Shown here: one piece after another, positions 3,454 to 27,545 of the stretch
How positions within the stretch are numbered: the stretch's first letter is position 1
Layout of the letters: every line of letters starts with the position of its first letter
Virus record (IMG/VR): IMGVR_UViG_3300009545_000018
Span: 186,001 to 250,000 of that record
Reading direction: 5' to 3' (one strand)
DNA: 64,000 bases
Made by a program: the position numbers and the translations under genes
Notes under the pieces: generated by a model
Database searches by the model: none
What the model was told of the DNA's origin: nothing
What the model saw: only the letters and a program-made list of their open reading frames with translations

Positions 3454-4605
3454 ATGACACACCAATTATTTGATATAATTTGTAAAAAACAACCCTATTT
3501 AAAATGGGTTAAACAAAAAACCGTATTGTTAGTTCGTCATGGCAGCCACGCTTATGGAACTAATACCGAATCTTCAGATGAAGATTTTAAAGGAATTTTT
3601 ATTCCTCCCAAAAATTATTATCTGGGAACTGTCCATAGAATTGAACAGTTGGAGCTAAAAGCTCCAGATCCAGATTGTGTAATCTATGAACTTCGTAAAT
3701 TTTTTAATCTTGCTATGGACAACAATCCTAATATTATTGAAGTATTGCATACTTCTCCAGAAGATCACTTATTTGTTGACGAATTGGGCGAGATGATTTT
3801 AGATAGACGTAATGATTTTTTATCTAAAAAAGCGAAACATACGTTCTTGGGTTATAGTGTTAGTCAACTTAAGAGAATAAAAACACATAAAAAATGGTTA
3901 ATGAATCCGCCAGCAAAACCACCCACTCGTGAGCAAATGGGTCTTCCAGATTCAACATTGATTCCACAAGATCAGTTAATGGCAGTGCAAGCCGAAATTC
4001 AAAAAGAATTAGATAAAGCTCAATTTGATTTTATGGACAATTTAGATGAGCCAACTAAAATTGGCATCAGAACAATTATGTCTGAAATGTTGGCTGAATT
4101 AAAAATCACCAGTGATGATCATTGGATGGCAGCTTCTAGAAAAATTGGGCTTTCTGATAATTTCATAGAAATAATGAAGAAAGAAAGAGAGTATACTTCT
4201 AGAAAACGTGAATGGGACCAATATAATAATTGGAAAGCTAATCGCAATCCAACACGAGCAGCTTTAGAAGAAAAATATGGATTTGATTGTAAACACGCTT
4301 ATCACTTGGTTAGGCTAATTAGGATGTGTGAAGAAATTTTAACAACTGGTAAAGTTATTGTAAAGCGCCCGGATAGAGAAGAGCTTCTTTCTATTAGAAA
4401 TGGTGCTTGGTCTTATGAAAAATTAATTGATTTTGCTGAGTCCAAAGAGAAGAACTTAAATGAACTGTATAATACATGTAATGTTATTCCTAAAGTTCCT
4501 GATAAAGAATCTTTAGATAAATTATGCATTCAATTAATAGAAAAATCTATTTCTAACTATTCAATGTATTCTGTTAAAAAGAAATTTTATTCTATGATAA
4601 GATAA
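3454..4605 (+). CDS. Pol-beta superfamily nucleotidyltransferase (RlaP/YcgL-like) with helical insertion
   Basis: GSHAYGTNTESSDEDFKG (GS...DxD) motif; KHAYHLVRLIRMCEEIL C-terminal motif. Confidence 0.8.
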   Translation: MTHQLFDIICKKQPYLKWVKQKTVLLVRHGSHAYGTNTESSDEDFKGIFIPPKNYYLGTVHRIEQLELKAPDPDCVIYELRKFFNLAMDNNPNIIEVLHTSPEDHLFVDELGEMILDRRNDFLSKKAKHTFLGYSVSQLKRIKTHKKWLMNPPAKPPTREQMGLPDSTLIPQDQLMAVQAEIQKELDKAQFDFMDNLDEPTKIGIRTIMSEMLAELKITSDDHWMAASRKIGLSDNFIEIMKKEREYTSRKREWDQYNNWKANRNPTRAALEEKYGFDCKHAYHLVRLIRMCEEILTTGKVIVKRPDREELLSIRNGAWSYEKLIDFAESKEKNLNELYNTCNVIPKVPDKESLDKLCIQLIEKSISNYSMYSVKKKFYSMIR

Positions 4606-8029: not shown

Positions 8030-8965
8030 ATGTCAGAAGTTATAATTGTTTGTGGTTTTCCTTCCAGTGGCAAGAGTACTGTAACTAAAAAATTAGCAGA
8101 GAAAGGTTACAGTATCTTAAATAGAGACACTGAAGGTGGAACTATTGCACAATTGCTTCCCAAGATGGAGGCTCTGTTAAATGATAATAAGAATGTCATA
8201 TTAGATAATCTATTTCCTACAGTTGAAAGTAGGAAGCCATTTATTGATTTAGCAAAAAGCAAAAATGTAAATATTAAATGTATTGTTATGAGTACAACTA
8301 TTGAAGAAGCTACTTTTAACTTTGTACAGCGTGCAATTGGCATATTAGGTGAATTTCCTACACCAGAGCTTATTAAAAAGGCTAAACACCCCAATATTTT
8401 TCCTCCTGCAGTAATGTTTAAATACAAAAAAGAATTTGAAAAACCAACTGTTGCTGAAGGTTTCTCAAGTGTAGAAATGTTTAAATTCAATAGAATTGAC
8501 GATCCTACCTTTACAAACAAGGCTTTAATTTTAGATTATGATGGTACCTTGAGAGAATGTATTGGAGGTAATGGTAAATATCCAGTTACTAAAGATCAAA
8601 TTGAAATTAAATCAAATAGAAAAGCCATTTTAGATAAATATAAATCTGAAGGTTATTTATTATTAGGAATGTCGAATCAGAGCGGAATATATAAAGGTGA
8701 TTTGAGTGATGCAGTAGCTCATGAGCTATTTCAACATACTAATAAACTATTAGGCATTGATATTGAGTATAACTTTTGCCCTCATCAATCTGCGCCAATT
8801 TCTTGTTATTGTAGAAAACCAATGCAAGGAAAATTTGTAGAGATGATGTTAAAGCATAAGCTTGATCGTAAACAATGTAAAATGGTTGGAGACTTTACGA
8901 GCGATTCCACTTTTGCGAAAAGAAGTGGCATCGAATATGTAGATCAGGCGGAGTTTTTTAAATGA
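8030..8965 (+). CDS. P-loop kinase fused to HAD-IIIA phosphatase (PNKP/GmhB-like)
   Basis: GFPSSGKST and ILNRD in the N-half; DYDGT, SNQSGI, CYCRKP, MVGD in the C-half. Confidence 0.85.
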   Translation: MSEVIIVCGFPSSGKSTVTKKLAEKGYSILNRDTEGGTIAQLLPKMEALLNDNKNVILDNLFPTVESRKPFIDLAKSKNVNIKCIVMSTTIEEATFNFVQRAIGILGEFPTPELIKKAKHPNIFPPAVMFKYKKEFEKPTVAEGFSSVEMFKFNRIDDPTFTNKALILDYDGTLRECIGGNGKYPVTKDQIEIKSNRKAILDKYKSEGYLLLGMSNQSGIYKGDLSDAVAHELFQHTNKLLGIDIEYNFCPHQSAPISCYCRKPMQGKFVEMMLKHKLDRKQCKMVGDFTSDSTFAKRSGIEYVDQAEFFK

Positions 8966-9960: not shown

Positions 9961-10199
9961 GAATTAATTGGGAAATATTTTTTGGAGCCTCTTCTCTTGT
10001 AGAAGCAATAATAGAATTTGCTTATTTGAATCATTCTTTTAAAGAATTTAAAAACAATTGTTATCCTAAAGAATGTAAAGAAGTAATTAGCAAATTAAAG
10101 CATAAGGGTTATAAAAAGAGTAGACGTTCGGCTCGAGAAGCTTTAATTCGTCGAGGATATAAAATTAAGACTAAATGGGAATTGGTATATTATGATTAA
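9957..10199 (+). CDS. Hypothetical basic protein
   Basis: ATGA-coupled ORF. Confidence 0.6.
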   Translation: MRINWEIFFGASSLVEAIIEFAYLNHSFKEFKNNCYPKECKEVISKLKHKGYKKSRRSAREALIRRGYKIKTKWELVYYD

Positions 10200-11160
10200 A
10201 ATTATATTAACAGTTGGGATACCAGCAAGCTCTAAAAGTACCTGGGCAAAAGCTGAGGTTGCTAAAGATCCAGAAGGAACCACTCGTATTAATCGAGATG
10301 ATTTAAGAAATATGATGTCTAACTATCACTTTTGTGATGCTAATGAAAAATTAGTGACAGAAGCCTCTGATGCTATACTACGTTCAGCTTTAAAGAAAGA
10401 TCGTAATATAATCTTGGATGAAACGAACCTTACGTCAAGAAACTTTGATAAGGTTTGTGATATTGTAAAGGAAATGAATATCCCTGCTATGGTGATGGAG
10501 AAAGCCTTTTATGTTGAACTAGAAGAGGCTTTACTCAGAAATTCTAAAAGAGAAGGGACCTCTAAGATTCCAGAAGATGTTATTCGTAAAATGTGGAGGA
10601 CTTCTGGTGGAAAACAACATAAATTTTATAAGCCTAAAGTTGAAGTATTTCAACCAGAAGATAAAAATGAAGTAATTTCAGCTCCATCCTACGATGTAAA
10701 TCTTCCAGATGCTATTATTTGTGATCTTGATGGTACTTGGGCATTATTCAATTCTATTGGTAAGAATGGCAAAGCTGTTATTAAACATCCTTCTGCTCAT
10801 TCTAGAAGTCCATATGATGCCTCTAAAGCTGACAAAGATGAAATTAATGAGCCCGTGCGCGACATTGTAGAAGCTTTTTATAATAAAGGCGTTAAAGTTA
10901 TATTTTGCTCGGGACGTGAAGATTGCTACCGTGTACAGACGGAGGCGCATATTAAAAAATATTCTAATATTAAATATGAATTATTTATGAGAACGACAGC
11001 TGATCAGCGTAAAGACTCTATCATTAAGAGTGAGTTATATGATAAATATATTAAGGGAAAATATAATATAAAATTTATTCTGGATGACCGGTCACAAGTG
11101 GTTTCTCTTTGGAGGTCCTTAGGGCTTACTTGCCTGCAAGTGGCGCCTGGCGACTTTTAA
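10192..11160 (+). CDS. pseT: T4-type polynucleotide 5'-kinase/3'-phosphatase
   Basis: GIPASSKST, RINRDDLR, ILDETN kinase motifs; DLDGT, SGRE, MR...D.RKDSIIKSELY, LDDR, LQVAPGDF phosphatase motifs. Confidence 0.92.
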   Translation: MIKIILTVGIPASSKSTWAKAEVAKDPEGTTRINRDDLRNMMSNYHFCDANEKLVTEASDAILRSALKKDRNIILDETNLTSRNFDKVCDIVKEMNIPAMVMEKAFYVELEEALLRNSKREGTSKIPEDVIRKMWRTSGGKQHKFYKPKVEVFQPEDKNEVISAPSYDVNLPDAIICDLDGTWALFNSIGKNGKAVIKHPSAHSRSPYDASKADKDEINEPVRDIVEAFYNKGVKVIFCSGREDCYRVQTEAHIKKYSNIKYELFMRTTADQRKDSIIKSELYDKYIKGKYNIKFILDDRSQVVSLWRSLGLTCLQVAPGDF

Positions 11161-13697: not shown

Positions 13698-14257
13698 TGA
13701 CAATCATATTTTTTACAGAAATTTTCAATATCGGTTTCTGTAATTTTATCGGCACCCATATCTATTATAGGGTACATTAAAGTATCAGGTTCATCTGTGT
13801 GTTCTAATCCAACTAAATGACCTAATTCATGTTCTACGACAACCTGATAATTATTCATGGTCATTCTAGTGGGCACTAATTTAATATATGGAATCATTCC
13901 ATAATTTTTACAAAACCCCAAAATACTAGGTCTACCTGATGTGATATCTAAAGCAATAATTTCTGGATCAATAGAATCTACTTTAAGAATTAAAATTCCT
14001 TTTTGAAGATCTACCTCTCTTTTTGTAGGTAAATTTATAATGGTAAATTTAACTTTACCATGAGTAGCTTCTTGCCAATCAAGAGCCGCATTAGAAATCA
14101 TTTTTATTTCTTGTTCATTAAATTTAAAATCTAAATATAAAATTGAATTAAATTCAGTTGGTTGTGTATATAATTCTTTATGTTGAATTAAAATAAATAC
14201 TTCTTTACAAAATATCGCCAAAATAATAATTAATAATATCTTATAGAAAATTTTCAA
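13694..14257 (-). CDS. Membrane-anchored metzincin (matrixin-like) Zn protease
   Basis: HELGHLVGLEH zinc motif, LMYP Met-turn, N-terminal hydrophobic segment. Confidence 0.88.
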   Translation of the reverse strand: MKIFYKILLIIILAIFCKEVFILIQHKELYTQPTEFNSILYLDFKFNEQEIKMISNAALDWQEATHGKVKFTIINLPTKREVDLQKGILILKVDSIDPEIIALDITSGRPSILGFCKNYGMIPYIKLVPTRMTMNNYQVVVEHELGHLVGLEHTDEPDTLMYPIIDMGADKITETDIENFCKKYDCH

Positions 14258-15023
14258 ATTTATCCTTCTTTCGTTTTAAAAAGAAAAATGCGTTATCATA
14301 AAGGTAGTGATATATTTTATCAATCTCTATTTGCTTATATAAGCAAATAACATATCCCTTTCCTTGATTTCTTAATTTTACATTAATATTATTATTTAAT
14401 AGTATTTTGTAAATTTCTTTTATAAATAACTCTGATCCTGAATATAAACTCCAAGATTTATTTTTCTTACCAATATACATACAGCCATCACCATCAAATA
14501 CTCCCCTAATAAAATCTTTGTGAAACTCTTTATTTATTAGTGGAAATTGTAAAATTAAACTTTTCTTAGGTACACAACCTAAATTTGATAAATCTTGACA
14601 CAACTTCCTACTACTAAATCGCACTTTACAATATTTATCATTTTTAATAACTTTAATTTTTTGGTTTGATTTTAATTCTTTTTTTAATTCTTCTAAATGA
14701 TTTAAATCTTTAACTGATAATTCAAATATTAATTCATCAGAGCTATTATAACAGTCTGCCATACAAAATCCCAACCAATATGCCTTATTAGCATTATCAA
14801 TTATTTCAAAATAATCTTCGTTCAAATCGAATTTTTTTGTTGCAAATTTACTACAAGCCAATGAACAGTATTTTCCTTGACCCCTTTTTTCATAAGCTAA
14901 ATTTTTTAAATAAAATGGATTCTTACATTTTAGGCAATATCGTAATCGTATATTTTTATTACACTCTTGTGAACAATATTTATTCAAATTTTTATGAAAA
15001 ATTCCACAATAACACTGCCTCAT
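14241..15023 (-). CDS. Free-standing LAGLIDADG homing endonuclease with N-terminal Cys-rich domain
   Basis: AYWLGFCMADC and FIRGVFDGDG motifs; N-terminal CxC/CSxxC clusters. Confidence 0.88.
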   Translation of the reverse strand: MRQCYCGIFHKNLNKYCSQECNKNIRLRYCLKCKNPFYLKNLAYEKRGQGKYCSLACSKFATKKFDLNEDYFEIIDNANKAYWLGFCMADCYNSSDELIFELSVKDLNHLEELKKELKSNQKIKVIKNDKYCKVRFSSRKLCQDLSNLGCVPKKSLILQFPLINKEFHKDFIRGVFDGDGCMYIGKKNKSWSLYSGSELFIKEIYKILLNNNINVKLRNQGKGYVICLYKQIEIDKIYHYLYDNAFFFLKRKKDKFENFL

Positions 15024-15064: not shown

Positions 15065-15712
15065 ATGAAATACCCACGAACTTATCATTTAACATTTTCA
15101 CCCGGCTGTACAAATGATGATAAAAAATTAGAAAAAAATGATTATTTTTTAAATACAAATCTTATTGTATCTGAAAAATTAGATGGTAGTAATTTGTGTT
15201 TTACAAAAAATGATTGTTTTGCAAGAAGCCATGGATCATCTCCAAAACACAAATCTTTTGACTTAGCAAAATCATATCATTCACAAATTGGATCTCAAAT
15301 ACCTGACAATTTATTTATATTTATGGAATATACTTTTGCAAAACACTCTATTTATTACAATAGCTTAGATAGTTATTTTCATGTTTTTGCTATATATAAT
15401 GAATTAACTAATAACTGGTTATCGTGGGAAGATGTAAAAAACATTTCAGTAAACTTAGGATTAATAACTGTCCCTGTGTTGTATGAAGGCAAGCTTTCTA
15501 CAGAAAAATCTTTAATAGAATTAAGTAGCAATTTTATGAGACAAAAGTCAGTGTATGGTCAAGAAATAGAGGGATTAGTATTTTCTACTACTAATGAGTT
15601 CTCTAATGATGATTTTTGGAAAAATAAAGCAAAAATAGTTAGAGCTAATCATGTTCAAACTTCTGAACATTGGAAAGACCAGGTAATCATTAAGAATAAA
15701 TTGCTTTCCTAA
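15065..15712 (+). CDS. Second ATP-dependent RNA ligase (short Rnl2/PF09414-like)
   Basis: KYPRTYHL, SEKLDGSN, FHVFAI, EGLV, KAKIVRANHVQ. Confidence 0.85.
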   Translation: MKYPRTYHLTFSPGCTNDDKKLEKNDYFLNTNLIVSEKLDGSNLCFTKNDCFARSHGSSPKHKSFDLAKSYHSQIGSQIPDNLFIFMEYTFAKHSIYYNSLDSYFHVFAIYNELTNNWLSWEDVKNISVNLGLITVPVLYEGKLSTEKSLIELSSNFMRQKSVYGQEIEGLVFSTTNEFSNDDFWKNKAKIVRANHVQTSEHWKDQVIIKNKLLS

Positions 15713-16080: not shown

Positions 16081-16803
16081 GTGATGAATAATACAGAATA
16101 TCGTACTATCATTATTGGTGATATTCATGGTTGTTTAACAGAGTTTAATAATCTTTTAGATAAATTAAATTACAATCCCAATACAGATAGGGTTATTTTA
16201 TTGGGAGATCTAATTGATCGAGGACCCGACTCTATTGGTGTACTTAGAACAGCCAGACAATTGAATTTAGAATGTGTTATGGGCAACCATGAACATAAAT
16301 TCTTAAAATGGTATAAGTCTTTTGGTACTAAAGTTAATTTTTATGATGAAAAAGATTATTATAAACAATTAACGCAAGAAGATATTGATTATATTTTCAA
16401 AATGCCGAGCTATATACAAGTTAATAATTTTATTATTGTACATGCAGGCGTAAAGCCAAATTTATCTATTGATAAACAAAGTAAAGACGACTTGTTATAT
16501 TTAAGGTATACTGATAAAAATAGAAAATTTATCTCATTAAAGAAAGTTTTTACTTTAGGCAAAGAAGCAACTGATGCCCATTTTTGGACAGAATTTTGGA
16601 AAGGTCCGGAATCAATTGTATATGGTCACAATGTAAATTCTTTAGAAACTCCTTTAATTGAAGAAGTTTTACCTGGAATTTTTTGTTATGGAATCGATAC
16701 AGGCTGTTGTTTTGGTGGTAAATTAACTGCTTTTATTTTAGAAACAAAAGAAATTATACAAATTAAATCTGAAAAAATATATTATCAGAGTGGTTTTAGT
16801 TGA
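16081..16803 (+). CDS. Calcineurin-like metallophosphoesterase (ApaH/PrpE-like)
   Basis: GDIHG, GDLIDRG, GNHE, VHAG, YGH, GIDTGC. Confidence 0.92.
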   Translation: MMNNTEYRTIIIGDIHGCLTEFNNLLDKLNYNPNTDRVILLGDLIDRGPDSIGVLRTARQLNLECVMGNHEHKFLKWYKSFGTKVNFYDEKDYYKQLTQEDIDYIFKMPSYIQVNNFIIVHAGVKPNLSIDKQSKDDLLYLRYTDKNRKFISLKKVFTLGKEATDAHFWTEFWKGPESIVYGHNVNSLETPLIEEVLPGIFCYGIDTGCCFGGKLTAFILETKEIIQIKSEKIYYQSGFS

Positions 16804-22979: not shown

Positions 22980-23765
22980 ATGTCTAATAATACTCTTAAA
23001 GACCGCATTGAGTCTTATCAAAAAACTACAAATTATACCCTGCTTAACAAAGTTCCGCTAATAATTAATGTTAATGGTAAAAATTTTTCAAAAATTACTT
23101 CATTATTAGAAAAGCCTTATGATAGTAATTTTGCTGAATGTATGTTTTCTACTGGATTAAGATTATGTAATGATATTGAAGGTATCGTTTTTGGTTATCA
23201 ACATAACGATGAAATTACTTTAATTATGCGTAATAATCAAAATGATGATACTATTCCTTGGTTTGATAATAATCTACAAAAAATTTGTTCAGTTACCTCT
23301 GCTATTGCAACCATGCATTTTAATGAATGTGCTTCTGAAATTAAAATGAATATGTTGGGAGATCCAATATTTACATGTGAAATATTTCCAGTACCTACAG
23401 TTGCAGAGGCTATTAATACTATGGTGTTTAAGCAACAACAAAATTTTCTTAGTTCTCTTCATTTTGCTTGTTTATACGAATTATTAAAAACTCATGATAA
23501 ACACACTATTAAAGAAATGTTATCTGGATTAAGTTCTGATGAAAAAATTGACTTATTAAAACAAGAAGCTAAAATAGATTTTAATAATTATCCATTACCA
23601 TTTAAACGAGGAATAGGTTATTATAAGGTTCCTAAAATAGTAGATGGTAAAATGAAAGCTAAATGGTTTCTTAATTCGGAATTGCCAATTTTTACTAGAG
23701 ATCAATCTTTTTTAAATAATATTTTAAAAAATGGGATGGATATTTTTAGAGAAAATGGTTTGTAA
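22980..23765 (+). CDS. Thg1-like (3'-5' polymerase fold) protein, first catalytic Asp apparently replaced by Asn
   Basis: LKDRIESYQ, IINVNGKNFSKIT (canonical xDGxxFxxxT), YQHNDEITL, WFDNNLQKICSV, FKRG. Confidence 0.8.
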   Translation: MSNNTLKDRIESYQKTTNYTLLNKVPLIINVNGKNFSKITSLLEKPYDSNFAECMFSTGLRLCNDIEGIVFGYQHNDEITLIMRNNQNDDTIPWFDNNLQKICSVTSAIATMHFNECASEIKMNMLGDPIFTCEIFPVPTVAEAINTMVFKQQQNFLSSLHFACLYELLKTHDKHTIKEMLSGLSSDEKIDLLKQEAKIDFNNYPLPFKRGIGYYKVPKIVDGKMKAKWFLNSELPIFTRDQSFLNNILKNGMDIFRENGL

Positions 23766-24279: not shown

Positions 24280-24633
24280 GGGATCGACATAGTTTCGACG
24301 TGGTTTGAAGTATTGAATTGCAAGTCCCTAATTATTGTCAAAGGGTAATATAAACAATAAACGTTCAAATGCAAACGACAATAGCATTGCTCCATTAGCA
24401 CAAGTTGCTTGATGGATACCTTGAGATGAGATATTTTTGGTAATCAAAAAGGTATTAACCCACTAAAAATAGTTCTTAAATTATCTATGGATTTAAGAAT
24501 AAAATAAACATTAGATAGCCTGTAAAGCAAATTTTACAAATGTTGTTAATTACATTCTTAATTAACTAAACTTGTGAATGATTTTCAATATGAATTATCA
24601 CGGATTCCGGGGCAGTACCGGACGATTCCACCA
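24280..24633 (+). ncRNA. ssrA: tmRNA, one-piece; tag (A)ANDNSIAPLAQVA
   Basis: 5' GGGATCG pairs with 3' CGATTCC-ACCA giving a G3:U70 Ala determinant; TTCGAC 5' motif; tag ORF GCAAACGAC...GCT TGA at 24371-24412; T arm TCCGG-GGCAGTA-CCGGA. Confidence 0.92.
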
Positions 24634-25819: not shown

Positions 25820-26401
25820 ATGTTATAGAACGATCTAATCAAAGATATGCAAAACTGCTTACAAACACAAGGGCAGTCTATTTATCAGCACGGGCTCTCA
25901 GTAAAAGAGCATTATTTTGATTTATTATTTATGTTAAAAGAAAATACCGCACTTCCAGGATGGAGGTTACCAGAATGGTTTTTTCAATATCGAGAACAAA
26001 TATTAAATATATTATTGCCCGAAGATATTGTTAAAGAATATCTTATATTTCATGATTGCGGCAAACCTTATTGTTTACTAATTGATGAAGAAGGTGGTAG
26101 ACATTTTCCAAATCATGCAGATAAATCTTATGATATTTGGTTAAAAGTGGGCGGCAATATACAAGCAGCTAAACTTATGAAAATGGATATGTTAATTCAT
26201 AAAATGAAGGCTGTAGATATTGACCAATTTATAAAAAATCCAGAAGCTATTACACTACTTTTAAGTGGATTAGCTGAGACACACTCTAACGCTAAAATGT
26301 TTGGAGGAATAGAATCAGAATCATTTAAGATTAAGTGGAATCAAATTAACAAACGTGGTAAGGTTATTTGTAACAAATTATTTAATACAAAGGAAAAATA
26401 A
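25820..26401 (+). CDS. HD-domain protein with in-frame amber at codon 3 (ORF track starts it at 25847)
   Basis: AGGAG (25807-11), 8 nt, then ATG TTA TAG AAC GAT CTA ATC AAA GAT ATG in frame with the 184-aa ORF; QHG...FHDCGKP...HFPNHA HD motifs. Confidence 0.75.
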
Positions 26402-26746
26402 ATGTCGTAGATTCAATCAAATGATAAATTATATGTTGTGACTCGTGAAGATATTTCAAAAGGATATCAAGGAGTGCAAGGTATACACGCAGCAATTCAG
26501 TTTGCAATTGAACATCCTCAACTTAATAAAGAATGGTTTGAGAAATCTAATTATTTAGGATTTCTATCTGTAAATAATGAAAAAGATTTATTAGATTTGT
26601 CTCAAAAAGCATTAGAACTAGGAATTGAGTTGTCTATATTTAGAGAGCCAGATATAGATAATGCAGTAACTGCAATAGCCTTGGCGCCAGGCAAGAAAAG
26701 TAAAAAACTTTGCAGCAAACTAAATTTAGCTATGAAAGAAAAATAA
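26402..26746 (+). CDS. PTH2-fold (peptidyl-tRNA hydrolase 2/PTRHD1-like) protein with in-frame amber at codon 3 (ORF track starts it at 26438)
   Basis: AAGGA SD and TAA-ATG coupling; ATG TCG TAG ATT CAA TCA AAT GAT AAA TTA TAT GTT GTG; KLYVVTREDI...QGIHAA...FREPDI...VTAIALAP. Confidence 0.8.
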
Positions 26747-26752
26747 ATTTAT

Positions 26753-26874
26753 GCGTCAGTAGCTCAATTAAAGTGAAAGTAGTACATTAACGTGATGTAT
26801 AATAAATGAGTATCTTAAGACCGAGCAGTCCATATTTAATGGAAAGGATGCAAGTGCAAATCTTGCCTGGCGCC
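26753..26874 (+). tRNA. tRNA-like RNA (UUU, Lys-like) with a 57-nt D-loop
   Basis: GCGTCAG/CTGGCGC acceptor, D-stem GCTC (26762-65)/GAGC (26823-26), anticodon loop TA-TTT-AA, GCAAG-TGCAAAT-CTTGC T arm; no encoded CCA. Confidence 0.65.
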
Positions 26875-26880
26875 CTATAT

Positions 26881-26954
26881 TCTCCTGTAAGTTCAGCGGT
26901 TAGAACTATGCTCCCTAAAAGCATTGGTCGTAGGTTCGAATCCTACCAGGAGAG
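26881..26954 (+). tRNA. Amber suppressor tRNA (CUA) #1, U1-A72/G73 body
   Basis: TCTCCTG/CAGGAGA acceptor, ATGCT-CCCTAAA-AGCAT anticodon arm (CTA at 26915-17), GTAGG-TTCGAAT-CCTAC T arm; C33; followed by CAA, not CCA. Confidence 0.8.
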
Positions 26955-26959
26955 CAAAT

Positions 26960-27035
26960 GGTTTGTTAGCTCAGTGATTAGAGCAGAGGATTCTAAAACC
27001 TTTGGTCGTGAGTTTGAATCTCACACAAACCACCA
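26960..27035 (+). tRNA. Amber suppressor tRNA (CUA) #2
   Basis: GGTTTGT/ACAAACC acceptor, GCTC/GAGC D-stem, loop TT-CTA-AA (26993-95), GTGAG-TTTGAAT-CTCAC T arm, A73 and encoded CCA. Confidence 0.85.
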
Positions 27036-27545
27036 ATGAAAAAGTTGCTATTAGAAATAGAATTGATACCAGCATCTTCATGGTATAGCAACGTCAGATC
27101 AAACGTAACTAAAAAGCAATGGGATATTATTAGAAATAAAGTTTATTCTGAAGCCTATAATCTTTGTCAAATATGTGGTGAGCAAGGAAACAAGCACCCA
27201 GTTGAATGTCATGAAATGTGGGAATTTGATGATTTTAAATTAATACAAAAATTAATAGGAATGATAGCATTATGTCCAATGTGTCACGCTACTAAACATT
27301 ATGGTTTATCAAAAATACAAGGTAAAGAAGAGATAATTTTTAATCATTTTATAAAAATTAATAATATTGACAAGGTAGCGGTAAAGCACTACATTGATTC
27401 TGTTTTTAAAATTTGGGAAACACGTAGCCAAAAAGAATGGGAATTAGATATTTCCATATTAAAAAACTATGGAGTAGATATTTATGAATCCAATAATTCA
27501 AAAAAAGATAGAGTTGTTAAAAAATCAACAACAAAAAATAGATGA
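27036..27545 (+). CDS. HNH-type (treble-clef) nuclease-like protein
   Basis: IELIPASSWYSNVRS, CQICG, ECHEMW, IALCPMCH. Confidence 0.78.
   Translation: MKKLLLEIELIPASSWYSNVRSNVTKKQWDIIRNKVYSEAYNLCQICGEQGNKHPVECHEMWEFDDFKLIQKLIGMIALCPMCHATKHYGLSKIQGKEEIIFNHFIKINNIDKVAVKHYIDSVFKIWETRSQKEWELDISILKNYGVDIYESNNSKKDRVVKKSTTKNR

Follow-up and report, generated by a model that had tools for sequence, protein, structure and literature searches.

A conserved tRNA of soil huge phages with a fifth, structured arm inside its D-loop

Oversize tRNA genes have been reported from Lak megaphages and other huge phages, where conserved introns in some tRNAs were described as enigmatic (Devoto et al., bioRxiv 10.1101/356790). 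Those inserts were placed in or near the anticodon loop by eukaryote-mode tRNAscan. In class II tRNAs (Leu, Ser, bacterial Tyr, Sec), a simple hairpin of 3-7 bp replaces the variable loop (positions 44-48) and projects from the core, and in Ser and Sec tRNAs this arm acts as a handle for specific enzymes. Archaeal and red-algal tRNA genes can carry introns at noncanonical positions including the D-loop, and these are defined by a bulge-helix-bulge motif and cut by EndA-family endonucleases (PMC4090602). Phage tRNAs of normal size have been proposed to escape anticodon nucleases through changes in the anticodon loop (PMC10264068), and a T5 tRNA-Lys neutralizes PARIS (PMC11464382). Jumbo phages carry PTH2, Thg1, ligase and PNK as a counter to tRNA cleavage (PMC7824862). 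Phage T4 encodes the stable RNAs rnaC (species 1, 139 nt) and rnaD (species 2, 119 nt), of unknown function, in its tRNA gene cluster. Bacterial YrlA, the tRNA-like partner of Ro/Rsr, is linked to RNA repair, is circularly permuted relative to tRNA and has the Ro-binding stem in place of the anticodon arm.

Here we examined a 122-nt RNA in a window of 64,000 nucleotides, positions 186,001 to 250,000 of IMG/VR record IMGVR_UViG_3300009545_000018, which belongs to a complete phage genome of 447,763 bp. The original prediction had described a tRNA-like RNA with a 57-nt D-loop containing its own hairpin, and every feature that it listed was found in the sequence, so that the observation is confirmed. 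The parts of the locus, in window coordinates, are as follows.

25820-26401, plus strand: conserved neighbor C1 (phrog_14850), probably HD-type, with an in-frame TAG at codon 3 (25826-25828)
26402-26746, plus strand: Pth2-like peptidyl-tRNA hydrolase gene (Pfam PF01981, E 1.2e-8) with an in-frame TAG at codon 3 (26408-26410), ending 6 nt before the element
26753-26759, plus strand: 5' strand of the acceptor stem, pairing with 26867-26873 (7 bp including one U.G)
26760-26765, plus strand: U8, A9 and the 5' strand of the D-stem (GCTC, 26762-26765, pairing with 26823-26826)
26766-26770, plus strand: 5' part of the D-loop (A14, A15, U16, U17, A18); the whole D-loop, 26766-26822, is 57 nt
26771-26818, plus strand: inserted fifth arm of about 48 nt, with a base helix (26771-26774 with 26813-26816), GAA (26775-26777) facing AGUA (26809-26812), an upper helix (26783-26787 with 26795-26799) and the heptaloop TAACGTG (26788-26794)
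26819-26826, plus strand: 3' part of the D-loop (G19, A, C, C) and 3' strand of the D-stem (GAGC)
26828-26844, plus strand: anticodon arm, stem 26828-26832 with 26840-26844 (the top pair is a G.A mismatch, the other 4 are Watson-Crick) and loop U32-A33-U34-U35-U36-A37-A38 (TATTTAA, 26833-26839)
26845-26849, plus strand: variable loop AGGAT (G46, U48)
26850-26866, plus strand: T arm, stem GCAAG/CTTGC and loop UGCAAAU with G55
[quoted passage not shown]
26881-27035, plus strand: two amber-suppressor tRNA(CUA) genes (ARAGORN and Rfam), 6 nt downstream and probably in the same transcription unit

The Rfam tRNA model (RF00005) matches 26753-26874 end to end (model positions 1-71) at 38.7 bits against a cut-off of 29 (E 1.2e-6), with 54 nt inserted in the D-loop. 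ARAGORN missed the element with and without its intron option, and the fast filters of the Rfam scans lost it in both the whole window and the whole genome. The expectation in the original prediction that standard finders would miss it was thus right. Based on the single sequence alone, the case is only modest: the minimum free energy structure is the five-arm cloverleaf, but with z = -2.1, and 2 of 200 shuffles fold as well. A 5-bp hairpin around NAACGTG occurs once in the genome, against 1.4 expected in shuffles. An independent assembly of the source run, a DNA run and the only run listed, reproduces the stretch without a single difference.

The decisive evidence is comparative. We identified 23 distinct homologues in huge-phage and metagenome contigs, one copy per genome, scoring 105-132 bits against the family model, whereas the next-best hits in those genomes are ordinary tRNAs at 43 bits or less. 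Other searches returned no members: exact 16-17-mer scans of viral contigs with the 5' half and the T arm gave only chance matches, BLAST against named phages found only suppressor tRNAs of Xanthomonas phage XacN1, and a scan of bacterial and archaeal genomes gave two chance matches. In an alignment of 19 homologues (20 rows including one canonical tRNA), 92.4% of cells are paired against 28-45% for slid structures, 23 of 30 pairs show double changes, and 0 of 500 shuffles reach the observed values. Double compensatory changes are present in 5 of 7 acceptor pairs, 5 of 5 anticodon pairs, 3 of 5 T-stem pairs, and all pairs of the base helix (4 of 4) and upper helix (5 of 5) of the arm, the upper helix being 100% paired. 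The D-stem is invariant or changes together with position 46. The tertiary core is likewise maintained: U8 and A14 are invariant, 15:48 is A:U in 12 and G:G in 7 members, and 13-22/46 is C-G/G in 13 and A.A/A in 6.

The homologues also refine the structure of the insert. They support a 5-bp helix and a 7-nt loop rather than the 8 bp with an ACG triloop of the original prediction, and they reveal the base helix and the GAA/AGUA internal loop, which resembles a loop-E/bulged-G motif. The heptaloop, (G/U)AACGUG, is 97% identical among the 19 members, but 15 of these were found with a pattern that required AACGTG, and four members found without that requirement have other arm tops. Its apparent strict invariance is thus partly an artifact of the search pattern. 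In deeper relatives the distal part and the length of the arm vary, from 46 to 66 nt.

The arm is inserted between A18 and G19. A18 and the following G and A (26819-26820) are invariant in the 19 members, and the T-loop is UGCRAAU in all 19. The element thus departs from the canonical elbow of G18-G19 with Psi55-C56 and from a D-loop of 7-11 nt. However, its elbow pair, A18:G55 instead of G18:Psi55, is a common variant in normal-size phage tRNAs: 72 of 90 with G55 have AG at positions 18-19, while of those with U55, 103 of 113 have GG and none has AG. The same T-loop is common in normal-size phage tRNAs and goes with A18. G55 was therefore rejected as a mark of a nonproteinogenic tRNA.

The anticodon loop departs from the canonical form as well. 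It keeps the frame U-A33-N-N-U-A-A, while positions 34-35 differ between phages (UUU here; GUU, GAU, GCU, UAU or UCU elsewhere), so that the label tRNA-Lys holds only for this phage. A33 is present in the focal RNA and most members. Four of the 19 aligned members have 8-nt loops, and two members (L154 and L371) have a normal U33, indicating that A33 is not essential to the family. The anticodon arm is the fastest-evolving paired part (39% pairwise identity) yet stays paired. Normal-size phage tRNAs with A33 exist, with CUU, UGU and GUU, and all five GUU tRNAs in the G55 sample lack U33. At the ends of the RNA, U is at position -1 in 18 of 23 members, the discriminator is U or C in 22 of 23 (one mis-parsed), and CCA follows it in 11 of 23, where chance would give about 0.4.

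The Pth2-like gene lies upstream of the element in 15 of 17 loci, and ARAGORN finds a tRNA(CUA) 3-10 nt after it in 12 of 23 members; eight or more members are not followed by a suppressor tRNA. The surrounding island contains two PNK-like genes, an RNA ligase, RlaP, Thg1-like and Pth2-like genes, and a metallophosphatase is also in the window. A structure model of C1 gave only weak matches (E 0.25 or worse) to HD domains and to the body of tRNA nucleotidyltransferases. A shared motif just upstream of the element is not a promoter but the conserved C terminus and stop codon of the Pth2-like gene. A 14-nt inverted repeat between 26683-26696 and the 3' end of the RNA is present only in the focal phage and was rejected as a functional element, and the arm's hairpin is not a repeated operator, since the genome has only one copy. 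Descent from tRNA-Cys or any single canonical tRNA was also rejected, because the best canonical matches to the model differ from genome to genome.

Compared with the systems introduced above, this locus shares with Lak phages the recoding of TAG, a large tRNA set and a conserved extra segment of tens of nucleotides, with no splicing mechanism known in either case. Here, however, the segment lies between positions 18 and 19, has its own covarying two-helix structure, no allele without it was found, and the phages come from soil or rhizosphere rather than the gut. By contrast with class II tRNAs, the variable loop is 5 nt and the arm emerges from the D-loop at the elbow. As in the archaeal and red-algal genes, an intervening sequence interrupts the D-loop, but neither a bulge-helix-bulge nor an EndA-type enzyme was found, and the host domain is bacterial, since the phage carries a tmRNA. 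Like the proposed nuclease-evading phage tRNAs, the element is an extra phage copy of a Lys(UUU)-type tRNA with a substitution next to the known PrrC cut site and lies among tRNA-repair genes; those tRNAs keep U33 and none has an added arm. T4 rnaC and rnaD are of similar length and adjacent to tRNA genes, and rnaC has a tRNA-like T arm and acceptor (a weak tRNA-Sec model match), but no relationship is detectable: the family model gives 5 bits for rnaC and nothing for rnaD, and they do not fit the tRNA model end to end. The phage genome has a weak TROVE-like ORF, but the YrlA model RF02553 does not match the element, its only hit (22 bits against 69) lying on the two suppressor tRNAs.

Our preferred interpretation, which remains tentative, is that this is a functional, single-copy gene for a five-armed tRNA with an otherwise normal L-shaped body. 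The RNA would be made together with the downstream suppressor tRNAs and trimmed like a tRNA, and the arm would stay in the mature RNA and project from the elbow. The anticodon loop is built like that of a tRNA reading codons that start with A (U36-A37-A38; UUU is Lys in this phage), except that A replaces the universal U33; the phage's own canonical tRNA-Lys has C32 and U33, where the element has U32 and A33. Canonical tRNA-Lys(UUU) genes coexist with the element in both complete genomes (G000 and G005), and the island is full of tRNA-repair genes. We therefore think that it may be a spare or decoy Lys-type tRNA that host tRNA-cutting defenses cannot process, namely PrrC-, RloC-, PARIS- or colicin-E5-like anticodon nucleases that cut at or next to U33, and possibly elbow-reading enzymes. 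The arm would act as a shield or as a handle for a phage factor. The analysis establishes the structure, its conservation, the tRNA-type ends, the makeup of the anticodon loop and the genomic context, whereas expression, retention of the arm, charging of the RNA and resistance to nucleases are inferred from sequence alone. Several points count against this interpretation. A33 removes the U-turn nucleotide used in decoding, which together with the 8-nt loops argues against efficient ribosomal use, and the C or U discriminator is not the A73/G73 usual for Lys, Asn, Ile or Arg tRNAs, so that charging by the matching synthetase is uncertain. On structural reasoning, an arm at the elbow may clash with ribosomal and EF-Tu-state contacts. 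Nuclease evasion does not explain the conserved motifs inside the arm, and no partner protein was identified, the neighboring genes being generic. The interpretation in the original prediction is thus partly supported: of its three options, a nuclease-resistant or decoy tRNA-Lys fits best, although only at the level of sequence.

A less likely possibility is that the element is a nondecoding tRNA-shaped RNA, serving as a protein-binding scaffold or as a processing or regulatory element of the suppressor-tRNA operon, in line with the regulatory mimic also proposed originally. It could, for example, recruit a phage factor through the arm, or time suppressor maturation and hence the switch to reading TAG. 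The element directly precedes tRNA(CUA) in at least 12 of 23 loci, and the two genes upstream are gated by a TAG at codon 3. A33, the 8-nt loop variants and the freely varying positions 34-35 suggest that the anticodon is not used for decoding, internal loops of the GAA/AGUA type often bind proteins, and T4 likewise has stable RNAs next to its tRNA genes. However, related huge phages have the Pth2-like gene and suppressor tRNAs without this RNA, so suppression does not need it. In addition, positions 34-35 always form sensible anticodons (G or U at 34) with U36-A37-A38 kept, and the encoded CCA and conserved tRNA core point to a tRNA-type life cycle.

It is unlikely, though not refuted, that the arm is an intron, with the 122-nt form as a precursor. 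In this view, a phage or host endonuclease would cut at the base of the arm and the phage PNK and RNA ligase would join the halves into a tRNA of about 74 nt with a D-loop of about 9 nt (A-A-U-U-A-G-A-C-C). Removing 26771-26818 would leave a D-loop very like those of normal-size A18:G55 phage tRNAs, such as AGGAGACA. The PNK and RNA-ligase genes cited in the original prediction are indeed in the window, although on their own they are a tRNA-repair kit. The variable length of the arm in deeper relatives, other oversize tRNA genes in this genome and the Lak introns are also compatible with this possibility. Yet every member found carries the arm, and no arm-less orthologue was found in the syntenic position or elsewhere in the 9 related genomes searched; only unrelated normal-size A33/G55 tRNAs turned up. 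The junction is a 5 x ~6-nt internal loop joining the D-stem to the arm's own base helix, without a 3-4-3 bulge-helix-bulge motif. An EndA-type endonuclease (PF01974) is absent from the complete genome, while the control search detects it in four archaea. The insert, at about 48-57 nt, is far too small for a group I intron, whose catalytic core exceeds 200 nt, and Rfam gave no match other than tRNA at E up to 10. The interior of the arm (heptaloop, GAA/AGUA) is more conserved than the acceptor or anticodon stems, which fits a working part of the RNA. Protein-dependent tRNA splicing is not known in bacteria or their phages.

A more doubtful and purely speculative idea is an orthogonal or nonribosomal aminoacyl carrier, whose amino acid identity would be set by the arm and the pyrimidine discriminator rather than by the anticodon, so that anticodon switches would redirect one amino acid to different A-starting codons or to a nonribosomal acceptor. 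The anticodon changes between close relatives while the acceptor, T arm and arm stay constant, the U/C discriminator does not match the identity sets of Lys, Asn, Ile or Arg, and staphylococcal nonproteinogenic tRNA-Gly also lack G18, G19, U55 and C56 (PMC4574755). However, the A18:G55 elbow is common in ordinary phage tRNAs with all kinds of anticodons and matching discriminators, and no dedicated synthetase or transferase is linked to the locus. Finally, a decayed tRNA gene hit by an insertion, the outcome set beforehand as refuting the original prediction, would fit the modest single-sequence fold and the loss of U33, G18 and U55 but is refuted for practical purposes by the compensatory changes in all six helices and in the tertiary pairs across the homologues, the single copy per genome in a conserved position, the encoded CCA and the absence of any other copy of the arm in the genome.

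In conclusion, we report here a tRNA with a fifth, independently folded arm inserted at the elbow between nucleotides 18 and 19 and conserved by covariation across many phages, an unusual natural design given that tRNA architecture is among the most conserved in biology. Because standard tRNA finders miss it, such genes are probably under-annotated. The element gives the question of whether oversize tRNA genes reflect introns or expansions a concrete test case with clear predictions, a 122-nt or a roughly 74-nt product, and the accompanying A18:G55 covariation in phage tRNAs is a clean natural experiment on the tRNA elbow. It is possible, although we consider it unlikely on present evidence, that the arm is a docking handle recognized by a dedicated phage factor, in an orthogonal fifth-arm tRNA system that keeps translation (or a nonribosomal aminoacyl transfer) running while host tRNAs are being destroyed, or else that it is removed by a so far unknown protein-dependent splicing pathway of a bacterial virus using the phage's PNK and ligase; either would be a new piece of tRNA biology. 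The element sits at the meeting point of stop-codon recoding, tRNA repair and host tRNA-cutting defenses in huge phages, and it could show a new way for viruses to protect or disguise a tRNA.

The window (bases 186001-250000) belongs to a 447,763-bp IMG/VR virus record with 31% G+C that is estimated to be 100% complete, and the same record appears as a rhizosphere metagenome contig. It is a huge phage that reads TAG as sense. It carries two tRNA(CUA) genes, 37-39 tRNA genes in all, and a tmRNA. Related huge phages (locus L189, positions 1194-1266, and G005, a second complete genome) carry a predicted tRNA with anticodon UUA (ochre-suppressor type) in addition to tRNA(CUA). Around the RNA studied here lies a translation and RNA-repair island that also contains two tRNA-Thr genes and an IF3 gene, and in which the following features were located in window coordinates.

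3454-4605, 8030-8965, 10192-11160, 15065-15712, 16081-16803 and 22980-23765: an RNA-repair set comprising an RlaP-type nucleotidyltransferase, two PNK-like proteins (one with a PNKP phosphatase domain), an RNA ligase (PF09414), a metallophosphatase and a Thg1-like 3'-5' polymerase
14241-15023 and 27036-27545: a LAGLIDADG-type gene and an HNH-type endonuclease gene
24280-24633: the tmRNA (Rfam, 51.4 bits; relatives L127, L128 and L129 have one in the same island at 100-115 bits)
25820-26746: the two genes just upstream of the RNA, C1 (phrog_14850) and a Pth2-like hydrolase, with in-frame TAG codons at 25826-25828 and 26408-26410
26753-26874: the tRNA-like RNA with the D-loop insertion

The original prediction of a tRNA-like RNA with an oversized, hairpin-containing D-loop held, as every element that it listed is present at the positions it gave. 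The Rfam tRNA model aligns 26753-26874 end to end at 38.7 bits (cut-off 29), with 54 nt inserted in the D-loop. ARAGORN misses the gene even in intron mode, and the Rfam fast filters lost it in scans of the whole window and of the whole genome. The minimum-energy fold of the single sequence is the five-arm cloverleaf, but only at z = -2.1, and the inner hairpin alone is not beyond chance in this genome (1 seen against 1.4 expected). The single sequence would therefore not settle the matter. Logan's independent assembly of the source run reproduces the region exactly.

Searches with short exact words returned no homologue. By contrast, retrieval of loci encoding relatives of the upstream Pth2-like protein gave 25 huge-phage loci, three of which (L126, L127 and L140) hold a full-length, 61-67% identical copy of the RNA, insert included, in the same position. 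A gapped pattern built from these found three more in viral contigs and gave 20 hits in metagenome contigs, all of them true members, which made 19 distinct sequences for the alignment and the family covariance model. Because this pattern required AACGTG, a further scan was performed without it and added the loci L117, L370, L371 and L372, for 23 in total. Each genome searched has exactly one copy, at 105-132 bits, and the next-best matches are ordinary tRNAs at 43 bits or less. Four related huge phages that share the Pth2-like gene and suppressor tRNAs lack the RNA, and no member was found in the prokaryote genome collection.

RNAalifold on seven sequences already returned the cloverleaf plus two helices inside the D-loop. 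On the model-based alignment of 19 members, which included one additional row for a canonical tRNA, we counted pairs for a structure that we specified. Of all cells, 92.4% form standard pairs, compared to 28-45% when partners are slid by 1-3 columns, and 23 of 30 pairs show changes on both sides. The covariation score is 0.645, against 0.07-0.13 for slid partners, and none of 500 shuffles reaches any observed measure. Both insert helices covary at every pair (4 of 4 and 5 of 5), and the upper one is 100% paired. Similarly, the core behaves as in real tRNAs: U8 and A14 are invariant, the Levitt pair is A15:U48 in 12 and G15:G48 in 7 members with no exceptions, and the 13-22 pair with base 46 is C-G/G in 13 and A.A/A in 6. 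The molecule is therefore under selection to fold as an L-shaped tRNA.

From the D stem outward, the insert begins after A14-R15-U16-N17-A18 with a 4-bp base helix. Directly next to this helix, GAA on the 5' strand faces AGUA on the 3' strand, an arrangement that resembles a loop-E / bulged-G motif, although this resemblance is based on the sequence pattern alone. A few unpaired bases, a 5-bp helix and the heptaloop (G/U)AACGUG follow, and after the arm come 2-4 nt and an invariant G-A. Among the four members found without the heptaloop requirement, L371 has GAACGUA, L117 has a 9-bp helix with a different loop, L370 has a 66-nt arm and L372 has a 46-nt arm. What is conserved at depth is the presence, position and base of the arm, whereas the heptaloop defines a large subfamily. 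The heptaloop is truly shared by the four sequences found independently of it, namely, the focal RNA, L126, L127 and L140.

The T loop is UGCRAAU in all members, that is, with G at position 55. A scan for normal-size tRNA genes with this loop hit at least 119 viral contigs (among loci L203-L326), and these are ordinary-looking tRNAs with many anticodons and mostly with U33. Their D-loops carry AG where G18-G19 normally sit: AG occurs in 72 of 90 G55 tRNAs, whereas among U55 tRNAs from the same loci 103 of 113 have GG and none has AG, a clean covariation of the elbow pair 18:55. G18:Psi55 is thus replaced by A18:G55 in a widespread type of phage tRNA. The family studied here is that type with the arm inserted between A18, which is invariant, and G19, the invariant G after the arm (26770 and 26819 in the window, with G55 at 26856). 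An early idea of ours, that G55 marks a non-proteinogenic tRNA, is ruled out by these data, although staphylococcal cell-wall tRNA-Gly also lack G18, G19, U55 and C56 (PMC4574755).

The anticodon stem is the least conserved paired region (39% pairwise identity) but remains 95% paired, and the loop frame is U32-A33-N34-N35-U36-A37-A38. Positions 34-36 read UUU in the focal phage and most others, GUU in L157, GAU in L154, L167 and L371 and within the 8-nt loops of L140, L168 and L173, GCU in L169, UAU in L176 and UCU in L183. All of these are sensible anticodons for codons starting with A, and L154 and L371 have a fully canonical loop with U33. Within the closely related L140 group the acceptor and T arms are identical while the anticodon arm differs, which points either to rapid retargeting or to an arms race. 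A33 is rare, and essentially no tRNA in the unbiased part of the G55 sample has it. A dedicated scan did find normal-size A33 tRNAs with CUU and UGU (L203/L205 and L204) and with GUU. All five phage tRNA(GUU) genes in the G55 sample (L206, L207, L238, L257 and L323) lack U33, two having A33, two C33 and one G33, which may relate to nucleases that need a pyrimidine at position 33.

The ends of the RNA are of tRNA type. The base before the 5' end is U in 18 of 23 members, the discriminator is a pyrimidine, and CCA follows it in 11 of 23, where chance would give about 0.4. Members without CCA are those followed after 3-10 nt by a tRNA(CUA), and in L176 the RNA starts directly after another tRNA's CCA. 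The upstream genes C1, probably HD-type on weak fold evidence only, and Pth2-like accompany the RNA in 12 and 15 of 17 loci, respectively. The HNH gene and IF3 follow it, and the HNH gene follows the suppressor tRNAs in 11 of 17 loci. C1 and the Pth2-like gene each have an in-frame TAG at codon 3, and in C1 an early TAG (codons 3-9) is present in all eight homologues examined, so that translation of both genes appears to depend on amber suppression. The family phrog_14850 (270 positions) matches C1 over positions 90-270 and, weakly, the Pth2-like protein over positions 6-74, which suggests that the two are fused in other phages. A perfect 14-nt inverted repeat between the end of the Pth2-like gene (26683-26696) and the 3' end of the RNA (26861-26874; T-stem 3' strand plus acceptor 3' strand) is absent from all 15 homologous loci checked and is probably coincidental.

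The interpretation given in the original prediction, which offered a spliced D-loop intron, a nuclease-resistant or decoy tRNA-Lys, or a regulatory tRNA mimic, is supported only in part, with the second of these fitting best. Both complete genomes with a UUU-type member also encode canonical tRNA-Lys(UUU) and tRNA-Lys(CUU), and the RNA is therefore an extra, not the only decoder. The extra copy differs from the canonical one exactly at positions 32-33, next to the bond that PrrC cuts, and it also differs at the elbow. It lives among genes that jumbo phages are thought to use against tRNA-cutting defences (PMC7824862), and phage tRNAs with anticodon-loop changes have been proposed, and in one case shown, to defeat such defences (PMC10264068, PMC11464382). 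Our best, though tentative, explanation is therefore a nuclease-proof spare or decoy tRNA of the Lys type, retargeted to other A-starting codons in other phages, in which the arm would shield the elbow or recruit a phage factor. Whereas the fold, its conservation, the tRNA-type ends and the genomic context follow from the comparisons presented here, retention of the arm, charging of the RNA and evasion of nucleases are inferred. In addition, A33 and an elbow arm should hamper ribosomal use, the pyrimidine discriminator does not fit the expected synthetases, and nothing in this explanation accounts for the internal motifs of the arm.

A non-decoding scaffold or regulator of the suppressor operon is less likely but remains possible. 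It is also possible, but unlikely on the sequence evidence, that the arm is an intron. Deletion of 26771-26818 would leave a D-loop much like that of the normal-size A18:G55 tRNAs, a PNK and a ligase are at hand, the distal part of the arm varies, and conserved "enigmatic introns" were reported in Lak megaphage tRNAs (10.1101/356790). This genome has four further oversize or aberrant tRNA-like genes outside the window, at genome positions 112231-112367, 110552-110688, 110692-110785 and 86090-86206. One is a long-variable-arm tRNA with about 54 nt in the anticodon loop that itself contains a T-arm-like hairpin, one has a 44-nt insert, one is a 94-nt tRNA-like RNA with a UGCAAAU T loop and an 8-bp hairpin in place of the anticodon arm, and one has a long anticodon stem and a long variable region. 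However, no arm-less orthologue was found in nine related genomes, the junction is not a bulge-helix-bulge, and no EndA-type endonuclease is encoded in the genome. The arm is too small for a self-splicing intron and no intron model matches it, and its interior is among the best conserved parts of the molecule. An orthogonal or non-ribosomal carrier is not excluded but is improbable, and a pseudogene is excluded for practical purposes.

By comparison to known RNAs, the molecule conforms to tRNA in model score, stems and tertiary core, but departs from it in U33, G18/U55 and D-loop size. By the features tested, it is not a tRNA containing a BHB-type or group I intron. It is not YrlA, although a 534-aa ORF elsewhere in the genome (100007-100765, outside the window) gives two sub-threshold matches to the TROVE (Ro60) domain (18.9 and 17.4 bits) and may be a Ro-like protein, whose RNA partner would be a tRNA-like Y RNA. 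It has no detectable relationship to T4 rnaC and rnaD, the classical unexplained stable RNAs of a phage tRNA cluster. We found no description of a D-loop arm, or of the A18:G55 type, in the literature that we were able to search, which does not exclude a description elsewhere. We regard the RNA as a tRNA within the loosely described phenomenon of oversize tRNA genes in huge phages.
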